Below are positions 1 to 63,521 of a stretch of DNA of 64,000 bases, piece by piece. The first letter of the stretch is position 1. Each line of letters starts with the position of its first letter. Origin of the DNA: Takakia lepidozioides (taxonomy: Eukaryota > Plantae > Bryophyta). The DNA is taken from the NCBI GenBank assembly GCA_030704615.1, contig CM060732.1, positions 65,472,001 to 65,536,000 of the forward strand, written 5' to 3'. A program made the translations under genes and the position numbers. The notes below the pieces were generated by a model. That model was not told the origin of the DNA. It ran no database searches and was given only the letters and a program-made list of their open reading frames with translations.

Positions 1-1309
1 GGTGTACAGGTTCCTCCCTGGAATGCTTTTGATAAACGGTATTGGGAGTATGCATTCTCCATTGCTAATGACCTGTTGGATGACAATGGATGCTTGGTGT
101 TTTTGCAGGGCTCCGATGATTCATTTGCATTGGAGCTCTTTTCTTACTCCAGGGGCAGCTCTATTTCCGTATTATCAAGGAAATATACTTGCATCAATAC
201 CACCCCTCTACACACTCAGACAGGAAAGGTAAAAATCATCCCTCTTCAATATCTCATTGTTTGATGTTTCATCTTCCTACTCTCATACATATTATTAAAC
301 CATCCGGGTGCACTGTTTTTGTGGAAATGGCACGTCTAACAGACCATGTTCTTCCACGCCCATGTCCTCACCAAGCAAGGAGGACTATTCAAACTGCGTG
401 AGTCTGGCAAAGTTGTGGACCCCCTTGCAGACCCTGTTGAGTTGGATGCCATCTACAACCACATTCCAGATGTTGCACTACCCATGCAAACTCCTCAACA
501 AGCCTGGAGGGGTGCGCGAGACCGTAGTCCCGCCTTCATGCAAGTGTTGTTGGAGACATGCTCACCTCCTGGCTCCCGCATTTTGGATCTCACAGCTGGC
601 ACAGGTTTGCATTGGTCTCCATTTTGTAATTAAAATCTTCTGAGCTGATTCATGATCATTAACTGTTATCCGATATAATATCATCATTGCATGTTTTTTT
701 CCTGCAAGTTCTACATTTATTGCTGCCCGCGAGTCTGGACGTCACGTATTTGGTCTTGAGGGGGACCAGACGTTGTATGCAGCACGTCTCTCTGCACTTC
801 AAAATACTCAACCCGTTTTGGTTTCATCTGTGGTAACTCCAACCATTCAACGTCCTGTGAGTTTGTTGGAACCCCCGCTCCTAAGGTGGCGCGCAAGCTT
901 GGTCTTCATCTCGGCAGTACTTCCTAGTGAGTATGTCTCGCCTCCATTCCCTTTGTTGCAATCTCTATATTATTTGCAAAGCAAACCATTCCCATTTGAT
1001 TTGTTAACATAAGTATACATGTATGTGTGATGCAGTGATGGGATTGTGCGGACCATCTACGATAGTCTACCCCAAAGTCCTCTTTCATCGTTTTATCTAC
1101 CTTCGTATGCCGAGTCCCAAGCTTTGCATTCAATACATCAACAACGTGATGTAGGTCTTTCCAATGATCTCTTGTTTGACCGAAGAGCAGCTATTGTTGG
1201 ACAATCTGTGGATAGGTTGCGTAGAGTTGAGGCTTTCATGGATGTGTATGCCTCTGAATCACAGGCTTATGACACGGATGATGAAGTATCAGCTGATGAT
1301 GTTATGTAG
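1..1309 (+). pseudogene. Intron-containing N4-cytosine/N6-adenine (beta-class-like) DNA methyltransferase gene; 5' end outside the window; probably inactivated by a splice-acceptor mutation
   Basis: Exons <1-228, 343-604, 708-930, 1036-1309 join in one frame. Translation includes YWEYAFSIANDLLDDNGCLVFL and TCSPPGSRILDLTAGTG|STFIAARESGRHVFGLEGDQTLY. The latter matches the SAM-binding signature of beta-class amino-MTases (S..G..VLDPF.GSGTT..AA...GR...G.E....Y). Introns 229-342 and 931-1035 are GT-AG. Intron 605-707 ends in CAA rather than CAG. Confidence 0.75.
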
Positions 1310-2560
1310 GTAATTAGAAATTACATATACAATACATTGTCCTCATTGTCAGTCCGAATTTTTTGTTATTTTTTATGATACATGTATTTCTCTCTAGTGT
1401 AAGGTAAAACAAATGGGGCAAATGACATGGTGTTGAAATCAGATTTCATGTTATCTTCCTGTCATTTGATTTATCTATGTAATAGTTTGTACATAGATCT
1501 CTACTGCATTTCATAGATCCCTTTACCTTAATGCAAGTTCGACATGCACAGCACTATCAAATTTCATCATTAGTAAGATCAACCCTTATGAGTATTGTGG
1601 CATGTTATGTACACACAGGGTGACTATCTTTATCTCATTAGTGTTTCATTTCATTAGTGTTTCAAGTCTGAATGGGTAGTGTAGTGGTATGAACTAGGCT
1701 TGATACCCGATAGGTTGTGGATTCTATCTCTGATGGACATTATGTTTTTGTAAAATAAAAATGTTTCAGAAGATAGATATATAGATACTGCAAAACCTAT
1801 GTAACAAAGCTCCCTAGCATTGTCAAGCTCCCTAGCATTCCCTTAGCATTGCTCCATTCTGAACTTCAAACTAGACTCCCACCATTGGAAGAGCCCGTAC
1901 CTTCACCATTTGTATCTAACAAGGAGCCGTGCCTCGTCACTTTTTAATTTTTCGACCTTTTTTCTCATGTTGGAAAGCCATAAAAGCAACATGTTCATCT
2001 CCCATTCCTACACTCACCCATGTGGAATAATAATACAATGAATATGAAATATTCTATATAGAATATTCTTATTCCATCCTTTGATATTTTGACTATGGAC
2101 CCTAAGATTAGATGAATCACAATTATTTATTTATTTTTGGGTACCCTTATTTAAGTGTTGTGCATATAAAATTGTTCCTATGCATATCTAAAATTTGTAT
2201 GCACGCATACATTCCTCCATATGCATGCATTTGTGTGCGCATATAGTATAGGCTACCTCCTCTTAGCTTGCCAAATACGTCAGTGACCTTGGTTTAAGTA
2301 GGCTGACCCTCCTTCAACTTGGCCAGCTAATTGTTAAAAATAGGCTGGATGATGTATGGCAGCGTTCATCCAATTACTCACTTCACTACATTTATTGATT
2401 TTACAGCTTATCCAATGAATGAAATCTGCACACCCACCCATTATTCATTACCTACGCTGAACGGATGAATTCTTGTGTTCACCATCCACTCCTCGTCCAT
2501 TCCGACATATCCATCTTCCTCGCATCTTTGTCCGAAGATTTTCACGGAGCCCGACATTAC

Positions 2561-3863
2561 CAGTGTTGTGCGGGTATATTGTCTTAAACATACCCTCCGG
2601 GTCCGGGTATACTTTATTTTCAAAATTATATTTACCTTTTTGGGTAAGGATATATTACTACTGGTAGAATTTGAAGGGTATAAATAAACAATACAAATCC
2701 TCATTTATACCAGTGTTGTTATGGTATCAGTGTTAGGACATACCATACTGGTCCTGGTACCAGACGTATCACAAAAAATTTATATCAGTCTGGTCTATAT
2801 AATGGTGGATGTATAATTCTCTACATACTGGTATGAGTATGAGTATCATGACCACAATATCAGCTGGTACGAGATATCAATTCTGGTATCATTCCAAAGC
2901 CATCTTGAATTACAAGTTTATCACTAGCAAGTATCAAGTGAAAACAAATACAATATAAATAAAGAAATAAATATACATAAATACAAGTATGTAGGCATAT
3001 ATACACATAAATTAATATAGTATACATACCAGAGTAAATGAGGAAGACGGCGGGGAAGTACTGGTATTGAGGCTGGTATGAAAAAACTGTTACCAGCCTG
3101 GTCTTGTGTATGACCCAGTATTCTCCCAAATGATACCAGACTGGTCTGGTATCTAATACCAATGCATATACCAGTATTTTATACCAGTCCTTCACCTATA
3201 TACCAGACCAACACTGATTTATACCCTACGGGTATAAATAAATACCGGATATAGTTAAATAAATTTATTTCTAATATTTTATTCAGTTATATATCGAAGA
3301 TGTATGAGTGCTATACTCAACAATGCTGGCAATATTGATAAAATAATCTTGGGATAACCTGCATACCTACATAACACAACTTTACGAGCTCCATAAACTA
3401 AAATATGTTTCGAGAACATGGGTGGAGCACAAGTTACTTTGGAAGCCCCACAAGAGGGGTTGATTTGTAAATGCCACAAGAGACTAGGGGTTGGCGGAGC
3501 TTGAATACAGGTGGGGGTAGAGCAGTGGGGCCCATCAATGACCAACTCAGGTGCTTTAGTGGGTTACCTGTAGCTGCATGTTGAAGCAAGGCTGAAACCA
3601 ATTGGAAAAAGGGGTAGGATGGGATACTGATTTTCCTGCCACAGATATACCCTCTGATTTAAATCTTAGCCCCCTCTGGGACGGGTATATCCACACCCAA
3701 ATAGCCCGGTTATGTATAGGGTAAGGATAATTATCTGTTAATTACCATCCGGGTGTATTCTAATGGTGGATATAAATTAAACCGTAGGGTCCGGTTACAG
3801 TTAAATGGTTATACCTGATATACCCGGCGGGTATATCCGGGTATATGATATACCCGCACAACA
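2561..3863. mobile_element. hAT-type non-autonomous element (MITE), right terminus eroded
   Basis: Left end CAGTGTTGTGCGGGTATAT (2561); right end ATATACCCGCACAACA (3848-3863) lacks the final CTG. The equivalent site in repeat copy B (about 17980) is empty. Confidence 0.7.
2711..3216. mobile_element. hAT-type MITE nested in the previous element
   Basis: Termini CAGTGTTG...CAACACTG; perfect 8-bp TSD ATTTATAC at 2703-2710 and 3217-3224; rich in GGTAT/ATACC subterminal motifs. Confidence 0.85.
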
Positions 3864-6486
3864 ACCCTAGAGCGCCAAAGCTCGAGACAATGGACCACCA
3901 CTTGAATCATTTCATTTTTAGGATATGCCATCTCATTTCCACATCTTTCCTGATCACAAAATTTTCTATAAGAGGGCTCAATATGGAAAGTATTTTGTGA
4001 TCATAACATTATATTTTGATGATTCGATTTTGATATGTAAAGACCTAGCTATGTTGAAAAAGACAAAAAATGATATCTTAAAGAAATTTGAGATGGTGAA
4101 GTAGAAAGAGATCATTGTGATCACAACATTATATGTTGACGATCTGATTTTGGTATTTAAAAACTTGGCTCTGTTGGGAGAAAAACAAAAGAAAAACCAT
4201 ATCTAAAAAGAAGTTTGAGCTGGTCGATTTGATCCAATACCATTTGGGGTTATCACTATTTTGTGTTCAACAAGATCGAGCGATTTCTTTGAACTAGCAT
4301 AAGTTTCTTACGATATCTATAGACACTTTGGTATGGCTGAAAGTAGGTTGATAAATATGTCATTTGTCCCAAATTGTAAACTCTAAAATGAAATGGTGGG
4401 TCTTGGGGCAAGAAAAATTGGATAAAGCTAGGTTTTGATTTGGTCAAACCAATTTCTTTTCTCACTTTTTCTTTGGGACCTGATATTTGAGGTCCGGGCC
4501 AATGCTATAATCTCACAATTTCCACGGTGGACTTGGCTCATTTTTTGGTATGTCATGCATAAATGAGCTGGGCCGATTGCTATAAGGCTGGAATCTCCGG
4601 ATGATTTTTGGTAGGTTTCTAGGGGCAATTTACTGCAGCTGGGTACCCAAAATTGGTAAAAAGTCAAAAAAGGGCTTGGGAATTTAAGGGTTAAACTATT
4701 GCAAACTTGGAGAAAATGAGAGCTGTTATTTATTAGAATATTTTGGGGAGTCTCATGTATGTAATGGTTTGTATAAGACCGGATATTGCACAAGCAGTAG
4801 GGATTGTGAGCCAATTTGTGGCTAACCCTGGGTAACCATAATATTAAGCTGCAATTAAACGTATGTTTCATTATTTGAGAAGCACAATTGACTTTTGTAT
4901 GTGTAAGAGAGGAAACGTTGGTAAAGTTCATTTGGATGAAATGCATTTATAAATTCAGTACTGATTCAAATGATATCCTCATCCATATCGATTCACTTCC
5001 AGCCCATACATGGATCATCGGGATCAAGATTGTAGGAGTTTAAACAGTAACACGATTTAATTATATTGATCTTCAAGATACGGAAATCTACACACATTAC
5101 CTTCTTTTCTCTTCGTTTCTTTTCTTTTCATTTTCTTTCCCTTTTCTTGCTTCACTTCGAAGAAGACGAGTACTCTTTCGTCATTCTCAAGGTTAACATG
5201 TTGTTTATTTGCTTCCTCAAAACTTTCAACTGTCCCTCTTGGTCTCTTTCTTGCTGCACAGCCAACAAGGATCCTTCACATGCCAAAATTCCTGGCTTCC
5301 ATACTTGATTTGTCATGCCAAAAAGTTTGTACCCCCTCATTCTCAGTTCTGAATACTCCATGGGTCCATTGTCTAATTTCACCTGCAGCTCTACTTGTGT
5401 AGCCGTCCAAGGATTTATCCAAAGATGATGGGGTTCATTATGATGCTCTTCATTACTCCATGGCCTTGCCGATTCTTCATTATAGCTGTTGCAATTCGAG
5501 TTGGCTGCCTCAAACTCTTGGTCATTGCTAAGGTTCAAACGTTTCTTCCACTCATTTGTTGTGCATTCTCATTCCAAGGCTCATATTGCATTAATTGTAG
5601 GTCTGCATATGCTTCTTTTGTGATCAGGTTGCTTCCGTGTTGCTAGCACACATTAGGTTTCTCCTCATATCCTTGTACCTCATTTGAACATACATCAACT
5701 TGGCGCTGCTTGTCTTGGATCCGGTTGTCCCCTGTTGACGCTCCTCTTGTACTTCTTCCTTGCAGCCTCGTCCTTCAACAAGCTGAATCTCCTCCTCAAT
5801 ATCATTGGCATGGAGGTCCGCCTAGAGTTGATCAATGATTTGACACTATTCCTTAGCGTCTGTATGAAGGACAAACAAGTCTTCCCTCCTAATTTTTGGT
5901 TCTTTCACCTTCTCTATGCATGGCTTTGTTGACCATGATGTGTTTGCCAGTATTTATCTTGAAATGTCCATTTCCTTGTCCATTCCAGGTTGCAAAGTCT
6001 CAAGGTAGTGACGCACTCTCTCCGCACCAACATTGTGTATTTAATATTGTCTTTGACTTTGCATTATAAAACAATGAGTTTTTTTTATCATCAAAGAAGA
6101 TTCAATGCTCTTTGTGTAGGTGTATTACAATGATGTTGGATTATTTGACTATAAGCTTAACGTTGATTTACTGACCAAATTAGACCATTGTTCCATTCAT
6201 GATTAAATAACTTTAAGAAGATATTGAGTTAAAAACTATCTTCCTTGACATTTGCGAAATACTAGTCTCTTCCTCTTATTCTTCCATTGTCCGTGTTGTT
6301 ACGCTTTAATTACTCTTGATGATTTGTTGCGGCAGTCTAACACTTTTGGTCCATTGCCGTGTTGTATCTCCCTGTCAGTTTTTTTTTTTTTTTCAAATCA
6401 CTTTACAGAGTTTATCTACCATGAATCCATATAACCACAACACTCTTCACTATGAAGGCCGTGGAATTATACTTCTTACTAACTTA

Positions 6487-17659: not shown

Positions 17660-20600
17660 GGTGTTATCCCCATCTCAACTTGTCAAATACAACAGTGACC
17701 TTAGTTTAAGTAGCGCCGCCCCTCCTTCAACTTGGCTAGCTAATTGTTAAAAATAGGTTGGATGATGTATAACAACGTTCATCCAATTACTCACTTCACT
17801 ACATTCATTGAATTTACAATTTATCCAACGAATGAAATCTGCACACCTACTCATTATTCATTACCTACGCTGAACAGATGATTTCTTGTGTTCACCATCC
17901 ACTCCTCGTCCATTCCGACACATCCATCCACAATCCTTCCTCGCATCCTTGTCTGAAGATTTTCACGGAGCCCAACATTACCCTCCAGCGCCAAAACTCC
18001 AGACAATGGACCACCACTTAATCATTTCATTTTCATGATATGCCATCTCATTCCCACATCTTTACTGATCACAAAATTTGCTATAAGAGGGTTCATGGAA
18101 AGTATTTTGTGATCATAACATTATATGTTGATGATTCGATTTTGATCTTTAAAGACCTAGCTTTGTTGAAAAAGACAAAAAACAATATCTTAAAGAAATT
18201 TGAGATGGTGGATCAGAAAAAGATCATTGTGATCACAACATTATATGTTGACGATCTGATTTTGGTCTTTAAAAACTTGGCTCTGTTGGGAGGAAAAAAA
18301 AAAAAAAACATATGTCAAAGAAGTTTGAGCTAGTCGATTTGAATCGGTGGAATTTTCATTCCATTGTGGAATTTCCCTTCTTCCGGGTGATTTCACTTTC
18401 TAGAGTACTTACAGGGAAATTTACCCCCTATTTTCACATACAAACCGACCCCCTCCAAAATTTGTTCTTTGGATCTGAAATTTTGTGTGAGTGTCCTGCA
18501 TGTGCCCCACATTCATAATGTGGAGGGCATTTCCACGGGAAAAATCCAAAACATTGGGAAAATCCTTGGTCAAAGGAGTTTTTTCAAGCTGAAATGTGAT
18601 GGACTTGAAAAAACCACAGTACAAAATTATTATAATATACCAATTGGAACGGTAAAAAAACTCTGCAATTTTGCAGGTAGGAGCATGTAGTAGGTAGGAT
18701 GAAAGTTGTAAGGTTCATTTCCCTGGATGTTTGGGGCCAGGGAGATATGCCCTCATCCATGAAGGTATATACGTTTCTGGGGGTGGCCCACCAAAAAACA
18801 GCTCGTCGTTTAAGGGTTAAAGACTCGTCTTCTTCAAGAATTTGCACTTTGGAACAACATGACTTTTACTGATATACGTTCAGCCCAACTATATAGTGAT
18901 TCAAGATATCATCAAGATACTTATATATATACTTACGCACATCGTATTGTTGTAAAACCATTGCATATATGAGGTTTCCACAACACTCTCCCAAAGGAAC
19001 ATCGTACTTTTATGATTCATTTCATTTTAGAGTTTACAATTTGGGACAAATGAGATATTTATCAACATACTTTCAGCCATACCACAATGTCTATAGATAT
19101 CGTCAAGAAACTTATGCTAGTTCAAAGAAATCGCTCGATCTCGTTGAACACCAAATATTGTATTGGATTGCTTGTCCAGTTCTCCCTAACAACGAGTGCT
19201 CTGGACGTGGGCACCAATATGTTGTAACATTGCATTAGTAAGAGCAATAAGTGGTTGAAAGGTGCAGGGCAACAATGCACACAAGCCTGCCCAAATTTCA
19301 CAGGAAAATTCCAAAACGAAAAAACCAGATGTTCATTTAAGTGAAATTTCAAGTAGCGTCCATCTCAAGCAATCATTTCACTACTACATTTGGGGGGGGG
19401 GGGGGGGGGGGGGTGGTTGTTTAGCGATGCCTCAGTGACCTCCAAATGCCGCGCCTAGCCACGGAAATACACTATAGCGCCCGAGGCGCGCTGGGGACAA
19501 ATTGCGACGTCGGAAAGTCGCACCCACGTCGGTCCGACGTCGCTCCCGGAACGTCGCAAAATAGCGACCTAGGGGAATCGCTAATCCCCCGGGTCCCCCT
19601 GGCCACGACCAACGACGACGGAATGTCGTCGCCCCTCCGGGGCGTCGCAACAAAGGGCAAGGAGGGGGGTCCATCCCTCCCCTTGCGTCATGGGGCAGTC
19701 GCAAGGACGTCGCCCATCCCCAGAAATAGCCACGCGCCGGCGTCGCCGACATGTCGCACCCTGGGACATTAAAGCCCCCGCTCTGCGATGCCTGGACATC
19801 GCAGATGGGGTCTATTATGCCTAGGGGACTGGTGACGCCCGGAAATCGCCATGACATTGCTGCCATCTGGGGGCGTCGCTAGACCCCCATGGGTAGGGAG
19901 GTTCTCTGGCGATGCCTGGGAATCGCACGGACGTCGCAGCCCCCGGGGCTGTCGCTAGCTCCATGGGAGGGCACGTTCTTATGCGACTCCCTGGAGTCGC
20001 AACAACGTCGCAGCCCCTGGGCGGCGTCGCTAGCTCCACGATGGCGTGGTTCTGTTGCGACTCCTGCGAATCGCAAGAGTGTTGCTGGTCGCCCCCGGCC
20101 GTCGCGCCGGCGTCGCTGGGTGGGTGGGTGGGTGGGAGGGTAGCCAGCTGGTATTTGGGGCGGGGTTTTGGGGTTTGTTTTTCGTTTTGGGGGGAGGGGG
20201 TGGTGTGGGGTTTTCTTGGGGTTGGGGTGTGCCTCGTGCTTGCAAGAATTGCATGCATTCTAATCTATAGGTCGACACACCAAATCCACATGTCCATTAA
20301 GGTTAGAATGAGGATCGAAATGGCAACTGAAAATAATATATATAAAGCGAGTATTACCTGTACATGTCTCTAACTGGGAACCATCCCTCACTCCTCATCA
20401 CCTAAGTCATAGGTGTACTCGTCCAAGGAATGCAAGCTACGTTGGTGACCATGGTGAATTACAACATCCCTCCGTATCTTTCAATAAAAAAAAGACCATA
20501 TCATGTTGGGCTGCCATTGTACCGGGTGAGTGTTCCCATTTCATGCTTATTATTTCTTTGGATTTTACATTAATCTTCTTCTCTTTGGCGCAATTCCGAT

Positions 20601-22180
20601 GGATTAATGAAAAATCCATGAAAAAAATCCTTTGTAGGTGTGGCGATCTAGGAATGATTCTAGTGAAGTTGTGACTCGAAAAGCGACTCTAGGATTGTTG
20701 AGTTTATGTAGGAGGGCAAGAATGTTGGAAGACATGGTTCTTGTTCTACAAGTGTTGACTCTGAGTTCTGCAATAGTGAATGAAGGAAACATTTTTTTAA
20801 TTTTTTATTTGTTTTTGGTCCAATATTTTGCACGGATGTAGTGGTGCAAGGGTCGAATTCATAGAACAAAACACAACCAAAAAACAATTATTACGTAGCA
20901 GCAATCCCCAATCCTAGATCCCCAGGTAAGATGACACTTGCGACGCCCCAGCAGGCATTCGACTCCGGAGAATCGCAACATCGCCATTGTGGCATTTCGG
21001 CGACGTCTGGACGTTGCAAACCCCAGCGCGGCCTGACTTGGCCCTCCCCACGCGCCTAAGTGTGAGGGGGTGTTGTTGCGATCCTCGGCAGTCGCAGCCT
21101 TGCGGGAGCGTCGCAGAGGGTAAGTGCGACACCCGGGCGTCGCAAATCCCAGCTCGCTGGCGGGTCATCCCCAACAACAGTGATGTGGCAGAATCGCAAG
21201 CAGGTGAAGCATCATTGGAGCGGCGCGGCGGCGACGGGCCGACGTCGCAATTTTCGGGCCGGGCGCCTGCGCGGCGCTACAATCGCAGGAGGGTCGTCGC
21301 GTCTGGCGCGCCCGGGGTCCCGGCGTCGCTAACCCCCCCTAAACGTAGTAGTGTTTGCCGGACAGGCGTGCCTTTTCCGGCAAGTTTTCAGGGCCACGTC
21401 ACGAAAACCCCGCAATGTGAAGGGCTTCCTGGAAGTGAAAATGAGTGCACCCACCGCTGAATAGGGAGACAACCCGCAGACCCCGCCGTGAAAGGGGCCC
21501 ACTTGCCCATATGTCCTGCCAGGTCGCTCAGGTCAACCCCATGGAGAGCCCTGGGCCACAAATTCCAGCCCCCCCCCCCCGGGGCACTTGCAAAAATCGC
21601 CGATGGCGCTCCAGATCTCCATTTGGCCGCCGTAAATTTGAGGGTGTACAGCTCGCTGACCGCTGCGTCTTTTGTTCAGACGCCAGTTTCATCCGACTTC
21701 ATCCCTCGGAGATACGGAGATATTCCAGGGATAATAAAAACGGCCGACCCGATTCGGGTCGGCTCGTCGTTTAAGGGTTAATAAAGTACAGAACTTATTA
21801 GAATATTGTGGGAAGTCTCATGTATACAATGGTTTGTATAAGACCGGATATTGCACAAGGAGTGGGGATTGTGAGCCAATTTGTGGCTAATCTTGGGTAA
21901 CCATAATATTACGCTGCAGTAAAACGGATGTTCCGTTATCTGAGAAGCACAATGGACTTTTGTATGTGTATGAGAGGAAACTTACTGGTAATGTTCATTT
22001 GGATGAAATGTATTAAATTCAGTACTGGTTCAAATGGTATCCTCATCCATATCGATTCACCTCCGGCCCTCTCTCTCTTATACATAGATCATGGGGATCA
22101 AGATTGTAGGGGTTTAAACGTTTAAACAGTAACACGATTTAATCATATTGATCTTCAAGATATGGAAATCTACAACATTA
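17660..22180 (+). repeat. Copy B of the Copia-debris direct repeat, with a different set of insertions (about 18344-21781)
   Basis: See copy A. ORF 18040-18333 shows the duplicated ITLYVDD/TTLYVDD motif; 21800-21960 encodes GSLMYTMVCIRPDIAQGVGIVSQFV. Confidence 0.8.
19379..21353. mobile_element. Non-autonomous CACTA (En/Spm) transposon, 1975 bp
   Basis: TIRs CACTACTACATTTGGGGGG and CCCCCCTAAACGTAGTAGTG; 3-bp TSD TTT (19376-19378, 21354-21356); dense GTCGC/GCGAC subterminal repeats at both ends; AT-rich core with no transposase ORF. Confidence 0.9.
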
Positions 22181-22217
22181 TCTCATGAATTTTGACGTCA
22201 TGTGGTCGATCGCTAGA

Positions 22218-27819: not shown

Positions 27820-40297
<12,478 letters not shown>

Positions 40298-47569: not shown

Positions 47570-49760
47570 ATGCTATGCTATTCGTTAGGACCCTACCAGA
47601 CTATTTTTTTTTTTTCAAGAAATGGTCCGGCGGGCTTTTTGGACTTTCTACAGTTCTGGCAGTTTTGATTATAAATAATAATAAAAAGCATGTTTGTTGC
47701 ATGTATATGTGGTTGGCGCAATGGTAAGACGCATATGTTTGGCAGGGCAGGCCTTCCAAGGGTCGAATATTGTTGACATTTGGCAGTGGGAAGACATTAA
47801 TTTTAGATTTTCCGACTGTCTGTTTTTGCAATTATTTATGATCGGACAGCGTGTATGAATGATATAAATAAATCCAAGGTATAAATGTACAAGGATATAC
47901 CCTATATAATATCCTTGGATAAATGACACATTCATGAGGGGTACATAGTATATAACAGATTTTGGCCCCAATCCACATGGCCATGGTTCTCAATAGTCAC
48001 AAATTTCCCATGCCTCATGCATATGGGATAACTATACCCTTCCTTACAATATACCCTCATGTCAGTTTGTACCAGACATATGGTAGGGTAAATCTATGAA
48101 CTGCATCATCCAGTTATACCGTACCTGCCTACACCGTCCGATGATAATTAAATCCAAAAACAGACTGCCAGAAAGATGTAATTGAAGTCCTTCCGGTGCC
48201 CAATGTCACACATATTCAACCCCAAGAGCTAGCTTGCGAAATTCTCAAGCGATACCATTGTGCTAGCCATGCATACATTCAAAACCTATACTTTATCATG
48301 ATTACCTCCTGATCACCTCCGAAACTGCAGAAATTCCAAAAAGCCTGCCAAACTCCTTTTTCAAGAAAAATTAATTAGTCCTACAGGGTCCTGACGAATA
48401 GCATGGGCAAGTATGGTATACCAAATATGGGTATATGTCTTTTATATACCCTTAACGGTAGGCTAATATCCGGATATTATTTGTGGCCGGGTCCAGGTAC
48501 GTACAAATCCATTAACCGGTAATTAACCTATACCCGCACGACATTGGTTTTTTCTGAAGGTGCTCCCCAAACACATTAGCCCGAGTTCATGGGACACGCT
48601 GGAGAGGACTCTTAGCTTCAATATTATCACACTTGCAGATAGACTTTGTAGCACATGGCAACATTTCCTTACATAAGGAAGGACCATCCCCATGACTGCA
48701 AGAACTGCATAAATTCCAGAAAACTTCTTCAAGAAACATTAATTAGTCCTGCAGGGTCTTCACGAATAGCATGGACAAGTATCATATATTAAATATGGGT
48801 ATATGTCTAATGGTAGGGTAGTATCCGAGTATCACCTGTGGTTGGGTATGTATATATCCATTTATTGGTAAAACCTATACCTGCACAACATTGATTTTTT
48901 CCCCAATCATTTTAGCCCGGTTCCTGGGCACGCTGGAGAGGACTCTCAGCTTCCATACTATCACATGTGGCAGACTTTGGCAGCACGTGGCAACACTTCT
49001 TTACATAAGGAAGGCCATCTTGATGACTGTCAGTAGTGCAGAAATTCCAAAAAGCCTGCCGAACCCCTTCTTCAAGAAAAATTAATTAGTCCTGCAGGTC
49101 TTTGACCAGTGTTGGTCTGGTATGGTGTTTTGGAGATACCCGGAGGGTCCTGGTAGTACAAAAATTTAGATATGTCCCAAACAAGGATATGCAATATTAA
49201 AAAAAAACCTAGATTTTGGTACTTGCAGGGTATCAATAATGCTAGCATTTCACATTTGTAGACCTAGTATCAACAATGGTATGAAAACTTTGATACCAGC
49301 TGATATCAACTTCGGGTAAGGAATAAAAATACTTTTCTCCCTGCTTCTATATCATGTGATCTACATGCTATAATCAACGTATGTGCTTTCTTCTGAAATG
49401 TAATTTTAATTGTGCTTCATTGCGATCCCCAAAACCAAAGCCAAGAATCTCACAAATCTGCCATCATCTCTATATTAAGTGCCTCCACATTGATACTTGA
49501 ATGGCGATACCAGCAACCGAACTCAAGCGACAAAACAAGTAACAACATCAACAACTAGTGAGCCGAGACCAGTCAGCTAGGCTATCGCCCTCCCCGAAAC
49601 CCTAATCATATCCTACAAGTAGGTTACTCTATGGATGTCCAACCTATTTGGAACCGTCTGGTAGGGGCTTCTATACCCGGGTGCATAACCGGGTTGATAC
49701 CTGAGTTTCTATACATACCAGACCAACACTGGCCTTGACGAATAGCATGGACAAGTATGG
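47570..49760. repeat. Long imperfect inverted repeat (about 47570-47835 vs 48150-48405) followed by about 350-bp tandem units
   Basis: Motif GAAATTCCAAAAAGCCTGCC...TTAATTAGTCCT(A/G)CAGG...ACGAATAGCATGG at about 48330, 48710 and 49040 (the last split by a MITE), and in reverse complement at about 47575-47655. Confidence 0.7.
49107..49731. mobile_element. hAT-type MITE, 625 bp
   Basis: 18-bp perfect TIR CAGTGTTGGTCTGGTATG/CATACCAGACCAACACTG; imperfect 8-bp TSD TCTTTGAC/GCCTTGAC; empty sites visible in the neighbouring tandem units. Confidence 0.85.
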
Positions 49761-49769
49761 TATAGTACG

Positions 49770-51508
49770 TCTGCTATTTTCCAGTCGTATCAGCCTTTTA
49801 TGACTGCATGACTACCCAGTCAGATAAAACCAGTCAATTGTGACAAATGAGTCATAAGCGCCATACAGTCAAATCTGCTAGTCGTGGAGCTCACTGTTGA
49901 CGTGGCAACGGGGACGCCTAATCATAGTCATTGATAAGACCGTAGTAAATGACTGCGAATCCATGTCAGCTTCACGTGGAACGGAAAGGATATGCCACGT
50001 GTCACGTCAAAGGGAAGGCGACAGGGTCTTCACGACTGGCATATACGACTTCCACGGATTAACCCCAGGACAGTACGTGGAGAATACCGGGAACGATACG
50101 TGGCATGACAGGGTGACTTCCGCAGATTAACCCCATGACAACACGTGGATTAGACTGGACATGACACGTGGCATGACAATATGGAGCGGGAGGGTCTTTC
50201 GTGACTGGCATATATAACTTTGGACGTTTAATCCCAGGTCCACATGTGGAGTCAAATTATGCAGGATGGGGGTGGGGTAGTCGTTATGACTGGAACATAT
50301 GACTTCCATGGCGCACTCTGGATACTGCACGCGGCACGAGTATGGGCGAACATGAGGGGTGAAAGTGGCACGTGGCGGAGGCTCTGTGGATGGGAGGTAG
50401 TCGTGTACATGACCGTAGCATTGAAACACGAAAGCACCATTGAAAGCATATGAAAACATCATTGAAACATGAAAGCACATTTGAAATTGGAACATCGATT
50501 CAAATACAACGTGACTTAATGTTAAGAGATCCGTTCCATAATCTAATCCGGTGCTGCTACAAAAATGCACAAAACTGCAAAAGTTTAAGTAGACTTCCAA
50601 ATGCCTGAGCAGAAGATGCATACACTGGCTTGGCCGGACTTGGTCACCTACCTTCAACTGCCATCCAACCCGAAAACGACAGAAGATACATGAGCAAGCT
50701 TTCAGGCAATATAGCAACATTGACATATGTTAAACAAACTAACATCGCTGAGAATATGTCTAAGCACCATTACACAAACTCGATGTGTGCAAAATAGAAA
50801 ATTGCAGGTAGGGAACAGTAGCATGAAATTCTTCACTGAACTGCAGCTAACACCAGCAAATGCTAGTACTGTTGGATGAGAGCTCACTACACTTAATTCA
50901 TGTTAGCCCTCTCCTGCCCCAAACTGTCTATGTGAAGCCCTCCTTCCCAAACATCAAAATGCCCAACATGAGCAGGAGTGGTGTCAGGCCGAATTCGAGT
51001 AAGACAAATGGCCTTGAAGACATGGGTCTGCAGCAGCACCAAGGGAATTGTGTTAGAAACATGGTGATGCATACTACTACCAAATGACAACAAACAATGA
51101 GGCCCAGAGAGTACCTTCTGCCCCGGAAACTCTGCATTCGAAAGAGGCAGGGTATTTATACCAGTCCACATTTTGGAGATTTTGAACCCCGATGACTTCA
51201 TGTAGCTGTGAATGATCCGGCGGGATGCCATGTCCTGATCACCCCACTACAACAGATCGCGGTATATCTGACTGCCGAGCCGCGGTAGTCATGGTTTTCT
51301 TGACTTTGACCATGACTTCCCTGTATTTTTTGACCAAATGGGGCTTCACGTAGTCGTTGAAATGACTACGTGACTACGTAGTCCTCTTGGCGACTACTTT
51401 GGTAGACGTCGTCATGACTGTATAGCTCCGCACTAGACGGAAGGGTGGTCAACGATGGTTGACCAGTGCGAGCTTGCCACCAAATAGTCGCCGGAGTGAC
51501 TTCTAGTG
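49770..51508. mobile_element. CACTA-like remnant(s) surrounding a methyltransferase-like fragment
   Basis: GAC/GTC-rich subterminal-type tracts at 49770-50420 (including related units with GACTGGCATATA) and 51265-51500. CACTAC at 51245 and TAGTG ending at 51508. No matching TSD, so boundaries are uncertain. Confidence 0.5.
50893..51244 (-). pseudogene. Second, divergent amino-DNA-methyltransferase gene fragment (two exons)
   Basis: HSYMKSSGFKISKMWTGINTLPLSNAEFPGQK|THVFKAICLTR, with GT-AG intron 51114-51028, aligns to FSYSRGSSISVLSRKYTCINTTPLHTQTGK|TMFFHAHVLTK of the gene at 1-1309. Both have a phase-0 intron between K and T. Confidence 0.6.
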
Positions 51509-53473
51509 CAAGCTTGGTAACCAAAAGATTTAAAAAATTAAAAAGTTGCTTATAGGGTTGCCAATTAGAGGGCTCAGACTTGGCCTCTTTTTTGCTTTTT
51601 TTTTTGCTCCTGAGCGTTTTCTTGGTAGTATCGAGCCGAGAGATGAGAGATGGAATGCGATGATCAAAGCAAATGATGCAGGAAGGGGCGAAGCGCAACG
51701 TGCACCGCAACCGCAAATGTGGGCTCTTGGCTCCTGTTAGTACCATGATTTGGTATTCTTCCTTATGTTTACAAGGTTCTTGGGAGAGTCAGTTTGGTCT
51801 TAGCAGTCCGTGTTTCAATCGACGCCCACTCAGCTACACCGTGGTGGATCTCACAGAGCAATCCGACATTACCTGACTACAGACACAAGCAGCCGACACA
51901 AGAGGTCATCTTGGGTTCATGGTCAGTCAAATCCTCCATGGGTCATGACACAAGGTCGAGGACAATGTGGTGAGGGCACCTTCTTCTTTGACCTATTTCA
52001 GCCTGTTTTGACCTCTCATCAGACTCGGCCCTGAATTTCTTCACGATGGTGGGCTGCCTCATAGGATCGAATAATGCACATGTGCAGATCGTCCTTACAA
52101 AGGTCTAAGGGAGAAATTTTTAGTAGGGACCTCGACCGTAGTTTCCATGGTTTGAACCCTGGCCTTCAAGCTAAGACTATCTCGATTCGTCTCCCTGGCG
52201 TCCGCCGCTTGTCTGCGACTTTGACTCCCACAAGATCCCCTAGGGATCCCAGGCGGCGAAAGGAAGGTGACATGCGCCCTACCAAATTCTCAGAATCGCT
52301 GGTAAATGAGCTTGTTAAGTTGTTTGGCATGATGCACTTGTATTGAAGCAGCTTCAATGTTCCTTAATCCTCCTTTCATATTTTGAGATTTTGAATGCAT
52401 GTCTCTTAGTTAGTGAGGGAGAAAGAAGGAGAGGGGGAGAACCTGCAACACAGACTCAATGCAAGTACAGACAGCCAATTACTTTCAAATTGTTAGATGC
52501 TTCCCTCTTCTTTTTAGTTTCTAAGCTTTTTCATGATGATTGCACATTGGCTTTGTGTCAATGTACTGATACAACATGTACATCAATAAGAAAGGCCTCG
52601 CCAATCTGCTAATCACAGTTCCCTAAGACTTCGACAAGTTGCCTCCTGCTTGGAAACGGAGTCCAACGTTTTCACTAAACTCACCCAGCCAATGAGAGCA
52701 GTCTCACCGCCAGGCCAACCTCTGGACCAGTCCCCAAGTTTGTCTGCAGGGCTCTTCGCACGTTTTCCAGCCCCTTCCACATCTGGTCTTGCTTCCTGCC
52801 ATTTCATCATATGACGAGGACAATTTTTTGGGTTCAGATATGTACCTCTCTCATAAGCTCTATGAGCTTTCCGCGGACGTTATAAAGCACCATTTCATTT
52901 CATTTCATTTCTCTTTCTCGGCACTGATAAGTCCTCTTTCTCTCTTAGTAATGGGCCCTCAGCCCCCTTGTTGATGTAATAAAGTTTCTTTCTCTCAAGG
53001 AGGTGTTCCACTAAGAGGATCAGAAATGCTTAGCATATCTGCATGAGGCTTTGACTCTTAGACAATCCCTTAAGCAGTAGTTGTCTTTGGGCTGCTTGTG
53101 GTGGGCACCAATCTTTGTCTTGTTTCATGCTTCCTTTGTCACATAAGCTCTTTGAGCTTCCCGCGGACATCATAAAGTATCATTTCACTTCAATTCTTGC
53201 TCTCCTCATGGACATAATAGACTTCTGAGCCTTCACTTCTCTTTATCCAGCTAGAAGACCAGAGCAGCAGTGCTGAGATCAAGCTCAAGTCGATGCAATG
53301 TGTACATCTGTCGAGCGGCTTCTACTCACCCATCCCTTCGCTATCCGAGGTGGAAACTCCAAGATAGAAGAGTTGGATATCTCTAAGCACTCAGCCCGCT
53401 CAGAACAATCAGTCATGACCTACAGCTAGTGAATCATGGTTGTGCTTCCTATTTGTATTTCTTCTTGCCTTCA

Positions 53474-54218
53474 TGTTAGCAATTTACCTTACTGTGTATA
53501 CTGAAGCATCAGATTGCTTCAGTATCTACCAAGTTCCATTCACTCATCCATTCATTCCACAGCTTCACTCATGTCTCTATACTCAGTGTGATTGTATCGG
53601 ATAAGTATCAGATTATGATTTATCAGGTATTAAGCCAATGCCATGGTGACTCTAATCTGCCCTACAATATCACTACAACTTTGCATGTAACAACCATCTA
53701 CTGTTCATCTTTCCTCCTTCACAGTGCTCTCCATCCTTGCTCCCGTTCTTGCTCTTTGCCTGATCTCCCCTCATGCATGACCAAGAAGCGCTCCCCGTGA
53801 AGTGATCCCCTACCTGGTGCTGCTCTGCCTAATCTACCTGCAAGTTGTTCCAACCGCCTAACTAACTAACGGTCACCCCTGAAGTAACACGTTCCCTCTG
53901 CAGATGTCGTTCCCACACAATAGTTTCCTGCTAATGATAACCGTTCCCTCCGTGCGCTGTGATGGGCTGTGCCAAACTGTGTTGGGCTGTGACTGGCCGA
54001 GCTGTGACTGGCTGTGTCGTGTTGTGTCGGGCTGTGATAAGCTGTGATAGACTGTGACGGGCTGTGTTGGGCTGTGATAACCCATGACTTGACTGTGTGA
54101 GCCTGTCTACCACCCCTAAACCTGTGTGGCCTAAGTCTACCATCTGTAAGTCTGCGGAAAATTAAGGGTACCCCACAGAACCCGTAAAAGCGTCTAAGTC
54201 CCAAACAACCCTCTAACA
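53474..54218 (-). repeat. 3' LTR of the Ty3/Gypsy element
   Basis: Starts TGTTAG on the minus strand at 54218, just after the PPT. The nearest matching inverted terminus (TGTTAG on +) is at 53474; an alternative lies at about 51735. The left boundary is tentative because the 5' LTR is not in the window. Confidence 0.6.
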
Positions 54219-56731: not shown

Positions 56732-57729
56732 AGCATGAGCTCATTCATTGAAATAGCTCTAAGAAAGCTTGCAAGGCGTAGAGCATAAAAGTATGGTTGG
56801 CACAGAATGGAATGGGTAAGTGCGTGTAAGCCTGTGTGGCTTGCAAGTATCGAGTGAGAGAGAATGTACTCTCAACCCGTCCGTCCTTGCGCCACTGCGT
56901 AAGAAGTAAAGCGAGCGTATAATCTGTAATATCCGTCATAGCTACAAAGCTATAGCTTTGATTGCCCCTTCCGTCGAGACACTGGTTATTCGGAGTCACC
57001 CCGACTCTTCCGCTCATAACTCTTCTAATTTCTTGTTCTTGTTTCTTGGAAGGAACCACCTGCATGAAATTCTCGCTCCTGATTGGCTGTTGCCTCCTTG
57101 GGTAACTTCTTAATTTTACCCCCCTCAGTGGACATTCCTATCTGGAATGTCCACTAGGACAGCACATGTGGCAAAAGTCCCCATTTTCTGTACTCGTGAA
57201 GGGTTCCGTTACTTTTGCCCTGAATGCATTAATGGGCCCACAAATAGTTTTGGCTGATGTACCGGTTAGGTACTTTGACGGCCCAGTTTGTCCTCTTGCA
57301 TGATGACACCCACTTTTTCAATATATGCACCGCGGTGTGCTTCGCCCTAGTGGCCACATGTTCGTTTTTAGACATGCCTCCGTCTTCCCCTGTCCGCGTG
57401 GCACGTTCTCCAAGTTTGACTTCCAAGCTGTCCTTTCATCCGCCGGTCATTTTTCTGACATTAACCCGCATCCACCTGTCACTAACCCTATGGACTGTGC
57501 TACCCATGTGGGCTGTATTAGGCTGTGACAGGTTGTGTCAGACTGTTACGAGCTGTGATAGGCTGTGTGATGTTGTGGTGGGTTGTGATAGACTGTGTCA
57601 CACTGTGGTGGGCTATGATAGCTATGCGAACACCTGTAGCTTCCGCCCTTGCCATACACACTCGGCTTAATGACAAGTGCTCCATACTCGGTATCACCGG
57701 TGCAGTCCATGACTGTTTTTGTGTTTCAA

Positions 57730-60700: not shown

Positions 60701-63521
60701 TTGCACTTCCCATCATGCACAGTTAGTAACTGGGAATTCCAGTCATGGAATACCCTGGCCTGTTTCAGCCATGGTCGACCCAGCAATAAGGAGTAAGCTT
60801 CCATGACATCATCCATTTTCAATACAGTCACTGTGATCTTAAAGATCATCTTTTGAATCTGTATCTTAACTCCTCTTATCAAGCCTAATGGCTGAACACT
60901 TCTTTGATCCGCCATTGTTATTGTGAATGGGGCTGGTTTCATGATACTTAGACCAAGCTTCTGCCTTAATTGGTTTGTCATGATATTAACTCCAGAGCCT
61001 CCATCTATCAATACATCAGTCAAGTCTGTGCTTCCAATTCTCAATTGGATTACTGGCATAGAATCATCAAAGTCCATGCCTGTTTCTCGCCCTTCTGGCT
61101 TCACAATATAGCTTGTCACCTTGCTGTTCAGGTCTGTGTTCCCTGTCACATGGGCAATCTGATTGATTGCTTGATACTGTCTGTGCCTACAATGAGGTGC
61201 CATAGCCAATAGCTGTCCAATGGTAATCTCCGCTTTGGACTGGCATATTACTTCAGCCAAAGTCCCTTCATTACCCTACACTTGTGCAGCTTCTTTCTTC
61301 ACTTCATCTTCTCTTTCAGAATCAGAGGAATCTGCCATAGGGATATCAGTACTCTTCTGCATTTCCCTTATGGTATCAGCCACTTCCTTGTGTAGTTCCT
61401 TATCATCTCTCCAAGCCTCATCATCTTCAGGCACATCAATGTCATCTTCATTATCTTCATCTTCCTCATCTACTGGAGGTATTAGTTTAGCTTTGCTTCT
61501 GGTTACTATCATCGTACTCACTTCTGGTACAAAACATGGCCTAACCATGTGAGCTGCCACCACTGGGCCCTCATTCACAGGAGCTCTCATCTCATTCTGG
61601 TGTCTGATCTAGAATGGACAGGCTGCCTTGCGATGTCCTGCCTGATTACAATAGTAACACAGTTCTTCACCATTGGGTCCTCACCCTTGATCTGCTCTGG
61701 GATTATTTCTATAACTTGGATTACCCTGATAGTTGCCCCTGGGATTGCCCTGGTAATTCCCTCTTGGATTACCTCTCTCTTCCATACCATTGTTATAACC
61801 ACCAGGCCTACCATAGTGGTCCTGATCACTGTTTCTTCTTGGCTGGGGCTGCACTTGATGCACCCTTACTTGCCTAGGTTCTCTTGCAGCTGTCCTTCTG
61901 TTGTAATAACAATTTTCAGTAGAATGGTTATCTATTTTACAGATAGTACAGTGTTTCTCCTTCATGTGGCATTCAGTTGTGGTATGGCCTTCATTCTGGC
62001 ATTTTGCACACCAAACACCCTTCCTCTAATGTGTTGCAGCCTCTGTGGCATACTTCTTCAAGATCTCTTCCAATCTTTTCTCATAGTTATCCCTCTTCAA
62101 CTTTTCCTTCTTCTTACTCTTCTTCTTGAGCTCTTGCTCTTCTTCCTCATCTGACTCCTCCTCAGAGTCCTCATCATCCCTTTTCTCTCTCCTGAGCATT
62201 CCCAGTTGCTCAATTCTGTTAGCTGTTTCAAATGCCTCCTCCACTGTATTATGGGGTAGCATATCCACTTTCTTTTGCAACTCTGGTCTTAGTCCACTCA
62301 CAAACCAAGTCTTCTGTAACCCTGGTGCTGGTACAGCAGCCAGCTTTTTCATCATTAATTCCATCTTTTCCATGTACTCTTCAATAGTTTCAAGCTTCTT
62401 TTGCCTTAACTGTTGTAAACTTCCATACACTTCGTCCTCAGTTTTGCTTGTCCTGAACCTATTTCGGAATGCCGTACTAAGGCCATTCCAGGTCAGGAAA
62501 TGTTAATCAGGGAATCTTACATACCATTCACTTGCTTTCTTAATAAGTGAACAAGGAAACAGTCTCATCTTGGCATCATCGCCATTCTCATTGTTCACAA
62601 TACACATGTGCTCAAATTGGCTAATGTGTACATCATGATCCCCTTTCCCTGCGTATATTGGAAAATGTGGTTTTGCCCGTGTTGGAATACCGCCATTTGT
62701 GGCCTTACACCCTGCCCTCCGGTAGGTGCTGGTCCTCTTGTTGGTGCTGGTCCTTGAGGACCTGTTGTAGTAGTGGTGGAACTCCCATCAGGTGCTGGCC
62801 CCTGAGCACTCCCTGCTACTGGCCCCACTATATTCACAGTATTCCCAGCTCCAGTTGCACTACTTCCCACACTCTTTGTCCCCCCATAGCCAAATCCAGG
62901 CTACCCGCCTGATCCCCCTGAACCGACACCTTCGTTGGCCTGTGATCCAAGTGCTCCACTTGATCTAGGTCCAACAGGTTGGGATGTCCTGGTTGTAGTC
63001 TCAACCTCAACTGTTGGGTCTACTTCTTCATCTTCCAATTTCTTCTCTCTGTTTTCATCTTCCAAGTTCTGCTCTTGGGTTTCTTCCTCTTCACTCATGT
63101 AACTCAATTGCAATGGTGTTGGAGAGTCTGAACTCTCCATTGGCTCTGCCACATCCACCCCTCCTTCTTTGTCTTCCGTTTCAGAAACTGGAGTTCTTGC
63201 TTTTGGTGTTCCATGCCAACTCTTATCAAAGATTTTTGTCAAATCTTTTATCCAAGGATGTACCTCAGATCTCTCCCCTCGTGGCTGATCTTCTTCCTGT
63301 ACCAAATCCCTTAATCTTTCTTGTAAAGAATAAGAAGGAGTGGCATCCAACTCTAGTTCCTCCGGTATGGGTGATGTACTCTCCGATCTTAATGGTGTGA
63401 GAGGTCCAGATGACTCCCCTATGTCTATTCCTCTCTCCCAAAGATATGGATAATTAGCTTTCAAATAACTCTCTCTCTTTGCTGAATATCTTTGAAGTCT
63501 AGCTTCTCTTTCATCACTCAT
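57730..63521 (-). pseudogene. gag-pol polyprotein (interrupted)
   Basis: Gag (FPCSL...EWY, FVSGLRPEL), three CCHC knuckles (about 61620-62010), protease LIDGGSG/LLGRPW (60403-61260), RT LRVCVNY/FGLCNAPATF/FLDDF, partial RNase H CDAS...YYASR...NYSTTERE (59057-60385), integrase HHCC (58663-58902), WGLDFVGP/SDQGSHF/NGQAE and GPY (57858-58650). Confidence 0.93.

Follow-up and report, generated by a model that had tools for sequence, protein, structure and literature searches.

An open frame beside a CACTA-type end in the moss Takakia lepidozioides and its doubtful kinship with a methyltransferase-like gene family

Does a CACTA-type transposon in the moss Takakia lepidozioides carry a second, strongly diverged copy of a methyltransferase (MTase)-like gene? 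The question arises from a first-pass annotation of a 64,000-nucleotide stretch of contig CM060732.1 (positions 65,472,001 to 65,536,000; hereafter the window), which described a two-exon fragment on the minus strand inside CACTA-like DNA and read it, together with an MTase-like gene at the start of the window, as part of a transposon-borne family. We compared this fragment (candidate copy 2) with the gene at the window start (copy 1), with the relatives of that gene and with the transposon-type sequences that surround the fragment. The 117-codon frame underlying candidate copy 2 is probably a chance open frame in transposon-derived DNA; we infer its accidental origin from the anatomy of the stretch and from the homology tests, which failed.

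Copy 1 and its moss family

Copy 1, our reference for comparison, is the 3′ part of an MTase-like gene that is cut by the window start (1-1309, plus strand), with exon A at 1-228, exon B at 343-603 and exon C at about 710-859. The junction between exons A and B reads AAG|GTA at 228/229 and CAG|ACC at 342/343. Between exons B and C (604-710), the donor lies in phase 1 (..ACA G|gt), and the sole AG acceptor (caag|ttct) throws the conserved STFIAARESGRHVFGLE frame out of register; as this junction looks broken, copy 1 is probably a pseudogene. An exhaustive profile search with exon B returned 44 cluster representatives, almost all of them single-exon ORF fragments, and two of the 44, a bacterial repeat protein and a low-complexity protein, were false positives. 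A word search with exon A found one relative only, from which a broad exon A profile was not buildable. With a 4-sequence alignment, 13 family loci were retrieved from JGI metagenome contigs resembling moss host DNA. In these loci, exons A, B and C are 50-69% identical to those of copy 1 and the introns lie at the same positions (tblastn E 1e-35 to 1e-6); many of the loci contain frameshifts or stops. Among themselves, the family loci are 70-90% identical in DNA over several kb, with rearrangements that include inversions, and none of the 13 shows synteny with the window beyond 1-1150. Copy 1 hence belongs to a dispersed, decaying, multi-copy moss MTase-like family. To this extent the first-pass annotation's idea of a repeated, decaying family holds; the second copy that it placed in the window is not supported.

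The family resembles the beta-class N6A/N4C MTases (PF01555; M.RsrI, DpnA, CcrM) in the C-terminal AdoMet-binding region, at the pattern ..SPAFMQ..LDLT.GTG...GR..FG.E; the matches are weak and consistent, and all of those to PF01555 lie under the gathering score. Single exons of copy 1 had no match in Pfam. Family members match N6_N4_Mtase below threshold (P0031, E=0.0027, profile positions 139-218 of 221; P0033, E=0.0068), the AdoMet-binding motif is where the family profile aligns with DpnA (E=0.06) and with M.RsrI (E=1.3), and P0031 compared with CcrM gives E=0.46. Motif IV of the beta-class amino-methyltransferases has the form (D/S)PP(Y/F), whereas that of the family is DCPMG: an exon found in family loci upstream of the point at which the window starts carries ..IIVDCPMG.. 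at the position of the catalytic motif (L001:6740-6949, L002:1118-1348 and L008:9589-9672, with DCLMG in L004:1743-2030). Judged by this departure from DPPY, the active site may be altered or dead. The self-marking or anti-silencing activity suggested by the first-pass annotation is hypothetical.

In family loci (L008:6297-6727, also L001:1500-2846), arrays of palindromes of ~40 nt (GAAAACCATATG...CATATGGTTTTC type) precede the MTase-like exons at a distance of 3-4 kb. ParB and transposase domains were found in none of the family loci. A bacterial-type amino-methyltransferase in a bryophyte genome has a precedent in MpDN4MT1a/b of Marchantia, prokaryote-type N4-cytosine MTases that are encoded by tandem host genes, expressed in sperm and shown to have 4mC activity (bioRxiv 10.1101/2021.02.12.428880). 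In contrast to these, the copy 1 family consists of dispersed, decaying members and its catalytic motif is non-canonical, and it is by these features, rather than by sequence comparison, that we set the two apart.

The 117-codon frame and its comparison with the family

Candidate copy 2 consists of a stop-free frame of 117 codons on the minus strand (50896-51246) that closes with a stop. It can be divided into a putative exon A (51246-51115) with the 3′ end AAG|GTA, a putative intron of 87 nt (51114-51028), which is in frame and free of stops, and a putative exon B (51027-50896), which opens with CAG|ACC and terminates in the stop. The two peptides quoted in the first-pass annotation are really present on the minus strand, as are the GT/AG sites, and the junction sites AAG|GT and CAG|ACC fall on the aligned spots of the phase-0 intron of copy 1. 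The likeness between the copies amounts to about 11 of 22 residues around INT.PL, together with T..F.A..LT+ after an AG. The frame is held by a unique spacer of 824 bp (50421-51244, assigned to no strand) that lies between two motif-rich blocks and has no similarity to the remaining window or to the 13 family loci. Stop-free frames of at least 117 codons number 56 in the window and 25 in the reversed window.

The frame is open, contains an ATG at 51231 (MASRR...) and has GT/AG sites that look plausible; it might accordingly belong to a live gene, whether MTase-like or not, that has diverged very strongly. We regard this as very improbable, since the frame has no relatives in any database searched, is surrounded by transposon debris and runs into a stop where the conserved core of the family should begin, and since further exons are not recognisable.

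Candidate copy 2 was queried as separate exons and as the natural stop-free read-through piece. BLASTP between the two copies left exon A without a match and reached E=1.4 with exon B, and both tblastx and blastn between them were without a match. At E<=10, neither exon A, exon B nor the 117-aa stop-free piece matched any Pfam family, PF01555 included, and a PDB sequence search at the same threshold was likewise empty. A word search of 5.8 billion proteins revealed no relatives of candidate copy 2; the ESM Atlas yielded no usable match for it, nor for exon B of copy 1, which served as control.

The profiles of the moss family gave no significant match either. With a broad HMM built from 47 family fragments, candidate copy 2 obtained E=16 and about rank 26 of 2711 window pieces; with the HMMs derived from the 13 loci, it came to rank 27 of 2711 for exon A (E=14) and to rank 738 for exon B. 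Its best BLAST score against the 47 fragments was 19.2 bits (rank 116 of 823), with the top four matches all on the start of exon B. A DNA profile spanning exon A, the intron and exon B found no match in candidate copy 2 (nhmmer), and at the DNA level 44-54.3 kb resembles none of the 13 family loci. The first-pass annotation had itself named profile-profile significance as the test that could refute its alignment; hhalign, run with a 29-sequence alignment against candidate copy 2, returned a probability of 9% over 19 columns that include acceptor read-through, so that by its own measure the proposal is refuted. The claimed alignment of the two copies is thus not above chance in the standard homology tests (BLASTP, tblastx, HMMs, hhalign and nhmmer).

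The strongest blocks of the family (PPWNAF...NDLLDDNGC in exon A, WRGA..AFMQ..LDLT in exon B) occur in none of the six frames of 48-52 kb, and hence the conserved blocks expected on either side of the fragment are missing. Candidate copy 2 lacks the AdoMet-binding motif I (FxGxG-type, here LDLT.GTG), as the stop precedes the motif I region; catalytic motif IV would belong upstream of the CACTAC break, where nothing matching it was found. In Smith-Waterman comparisons with exon A of copy 1, candidate copy 2 is the best non-self piece (score 43), with the reversed window giving 41 twice, and for exon B it stands at rank 191. Its exon A rank drops from 2 with the single sequence to 27 with the family profile, which indicates that the match rests on residues peculiar to copy 1 and not on conserved positions.

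A residual signal is seen when collinearity is considered. On summing the scores of the exon A HMM and the broad HMM, with the correct order required, candidate copy 2 heads the 1163 real pieces with a sum of 4.8 bits, and the profile positions that it covers agree with the last part of exon A and the first part of exon B. The bare sum of 4.8 bits was reached by 18 of 30 synthetic windows. By a post hoc test, one out of 90 Markov windows contained a junction-consistent match of this strength, as did the one reversed window (~2/91); a stricter version of the match was seen in none of 120. This test was framed after the data had been seen, and part of the score comes from reading through a generic splice acceptor (LLQ); we therefore take the junction-consistent match as a hint (p about 0.01-0.02) and not as proof. 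As for the identical phase-0 intron of the first-pass annotation, the splice sites do lie at the aligned spots and the collinear match across them is rare in the nulls, as far as a post hoc assessment goes; the shared intron is a putative one.

These observations raise the alternative that the frame is a true, very diverged and now non-functional MTase-like relic of ~88 codons across the exon A/B junction, which we consider possible but doubtful. The rarity of the junction-consistent collinear match in the nulls, the top non-self Smith-Waterman rank for exon A, the phase-0 AAG|GT ... CAG|ACC at the aligned place of an intron that the family has kept, and the clustering of the top four BLAST matches on the start of exon B are all consistent with such a relic. 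Nevertheless, every standard test is non-significant, the conserved blocks are missing on both sides, DNA similarity to the 13 family loci is absent and the rarity test is post hoc. Moreover, divergence of this degree should bring stops or frameshifts, yet the frame is open even across the putative intron.

Motif-rich blocks and the CACTA-type end

The block to the left of the spacer (block L, 49768-50420, no strand) is rich in AGTC/GACT and ACGTG in both orientations, includes a 68-bp tandem duplication at 50047-50178 and has no recognisable CACTA tip. The block to its right (block R, 51245-51508, plus strand) is a CACTA-type end, in which CACTACAA at 51245-51252, with CACTAC at 51245-51250 on the plus strand, is followed rightwards by ~250 bp of subterminal-type motifs. 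Per 250 nt, AGTC/GACT occurs 11.4 times in 51245-51508 and 7.7 times in 49768-50420, compared with 1.5 times in the spacer and a window mean of 1.6 +/- 1.5, and it is in this form that the GAC/GTC-rich flanking repeats of the first-pass annotation are borne out. In Arabidopsis, CACTACAA is reported as the octamer that forms the terminus of both CACTA1 and Pack-CACTA (PMC6379663). The 51245 end is like CACTA (En/Spm) and Pack-CACTA elements both in this octamer and in its dense short subterminal repeats, which occur in both orientations. The CACTACAA end reads into the right-hand motif block, so that its element extends rightwards and does not include the fragment. The CACTAC at which the fragment was said to be cut thus exists, but its orientation does not support a position of the fragment inside CACTA-like DNA.

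Unlike CACTA elements, the stretch has no confirmed inverted mate, no 3-bp duplication and no transposase found in the window. A possible mate, CTAGTG at 51503-51508, lies exactly at the end of the right block, would delimit a mini-element of 264 bp and pairs with the 51245 end at 11 of 18 terminal bases. With CCC and CAA as its flanks, 51245-51508 lacks a 3-bp target-site duplication. Other mates of the 51245 terminus with at most three mismatches were not found except for a site at 62758-62775, which was dropped because it is coding-like gag sequence and has no subterminal motifs. No CACTA-type transposase was detected in the 10 ORFs scanned out of 16 window ORFs of at least 150 aa, a scan confined to unspliced frames of this length; the transposon-related domains in the scanned ORFs were gypsy RT/RNase H and protease only. 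Rfam had no match over 46-54.5 kb. The proposal that CACTA elements carry the family receives no support, as the 51245 terminus is present in none of the 13 family loci and no transposase was found in the window. Nothing in this analysis ties the copy 1 family to CACTA elements.

The boundaries can be read in three ways: as two CACTA-type fragments independent of each other, as a single degraded non-autonomous element, or as a capture intermediate like that of Pack-CACTA. It is rather improbable that 49768-51508 is one non-autonomous CACTA element with a degraded left tip, a right tip CTAGTG at 51508 and the spacer as cargo; in such an element, CACTAC at 51245 would be an internal, terminus-like subterminal repeat. 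A single element is consistent with motif-rich blocks only at both ends, with CTAGTG at the very end of the right block and with short motifs, ATGACTAC and GTAGTC among them, which blocks L and R have in common; however, its left boundary is without CACTA, neither end could be compared with a second copy and a target-site duplication is undefinable. Local alignment of blocks L and R in direct and inverted orientation scores 24 and 20, respectively, which is not above shuffles (95th percentile 24). An inverted-repeat relation of the two blocks was dropped for this reason, despite two adjacent perfect 10-mers.

If the frame were a relic, it may tentatively be pictured either as cut by a CACTA-type insertion at 51245 or as taken up between a pair of CACTA-type ends, as in Pack-CACTA capture. 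A direct-repeat model has been proposed for Pack-CACTA capture, and blocks L and R resemble the capture intermediate in their same-strand motifs and in the short unique spacer between them (PMC6379663). In contrast to Pack-CACTA, the gene origin of the fragment is here only putative. We consider it unlikely that the 88-codon fragment really is an ancient remnant of an MTase-like gene, picked up or cut by a CACTA-type element.

The wider neighbourhood is rich in repeats. A 368-bp repeat family occupies 47575-49102; its copies are direct except for one in inverted orientation (75-94% identity), and it may be a satellite or the internal repeats of a transposon. A MITE-like insertion (49106-49732) interrupts the third unit, which resumes at 49731-49764. 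Homology to this repeat unit stops at ~49765, where block L begins. The MITE-like insertion terminates in inverted repeats of 19 bp without a mismatch (CCAGTGTTGGTCTGGTATG and its complement), and the 8-mers on its flanks, TCTTTGAC and GCCTTGAC, agree in 6 of 8 positions, which suggests a hAT-type element. An Argonaute gene with ArgoL1 and Piwi domains lies at 10-13 kb. On either side of it, 2261-5102 and 17673-22183 contain four collinear or inverted repeat segments (143-393 bp, 86-94% identity) that are probably fragments of one dispersed repeat. The N-terminal exon of an ALE2-like receptor kinase is found on the minus strand at 31.5-32.1 kb; near this gene, at 29612-29764, there is a repeat of ~150 bp that recurs, at 78-88% identity, to the right of the CACTA-type end, twice within 52849-53196 and 290 bp apart. 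A Ty3/gypsy retroelement on the minus strand spans 54-63.5 kb (RT, RNase H, protease). At its edge, 53956-54080 forms a degenerate 10-bp tandem array, GCTGTGAYNG, of ~12 copies, with a weaker copy at 57508-57620. A second CACTACAAC, at 53671-53679 on the plus strand, adjoins no subterminal motif block and is probably there by chance.

Reading and meaning of the locus

Taken as an accidental frame, the locus would read as follows. The stretch 49768-51508, made up of a CACTA-style subterminal block without a clear end, the unique 824-bp spacer and a further block of 250 bp that belongs to the CACTACAA terminus, would be non-functional, transposon-derived DNA. The right motif block runs away from the spacer, and the 117-codon frame within the spacer would be accidental, its likeness to copy 1 falling within what chance may produce once all six frames of an entire window are compared. 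The best non-self Smith-Waterman match, the top collinear rank and the rare junction-consistent match count against a chance frame. On the chance-frame reading, no methyltransferase copy would be demonstrable at 49768-51508 and no function would be expected of it.

The first-pass annotation saw here its best candidate for an undescribed system in the window. Candidate copy 2 is not separable from a chance open frame and its CACTA link is mere adjacency, so that as it stands it carries little weight; were it a true relic, it would add one more dead copy and a hint of capture by a CACTA-type element. The real interest lies in the dispersed moss family of bacterial-type MTase-like sequences, with its DCPMG motif and its palindrome arrays, of which copy 1 is the member here.
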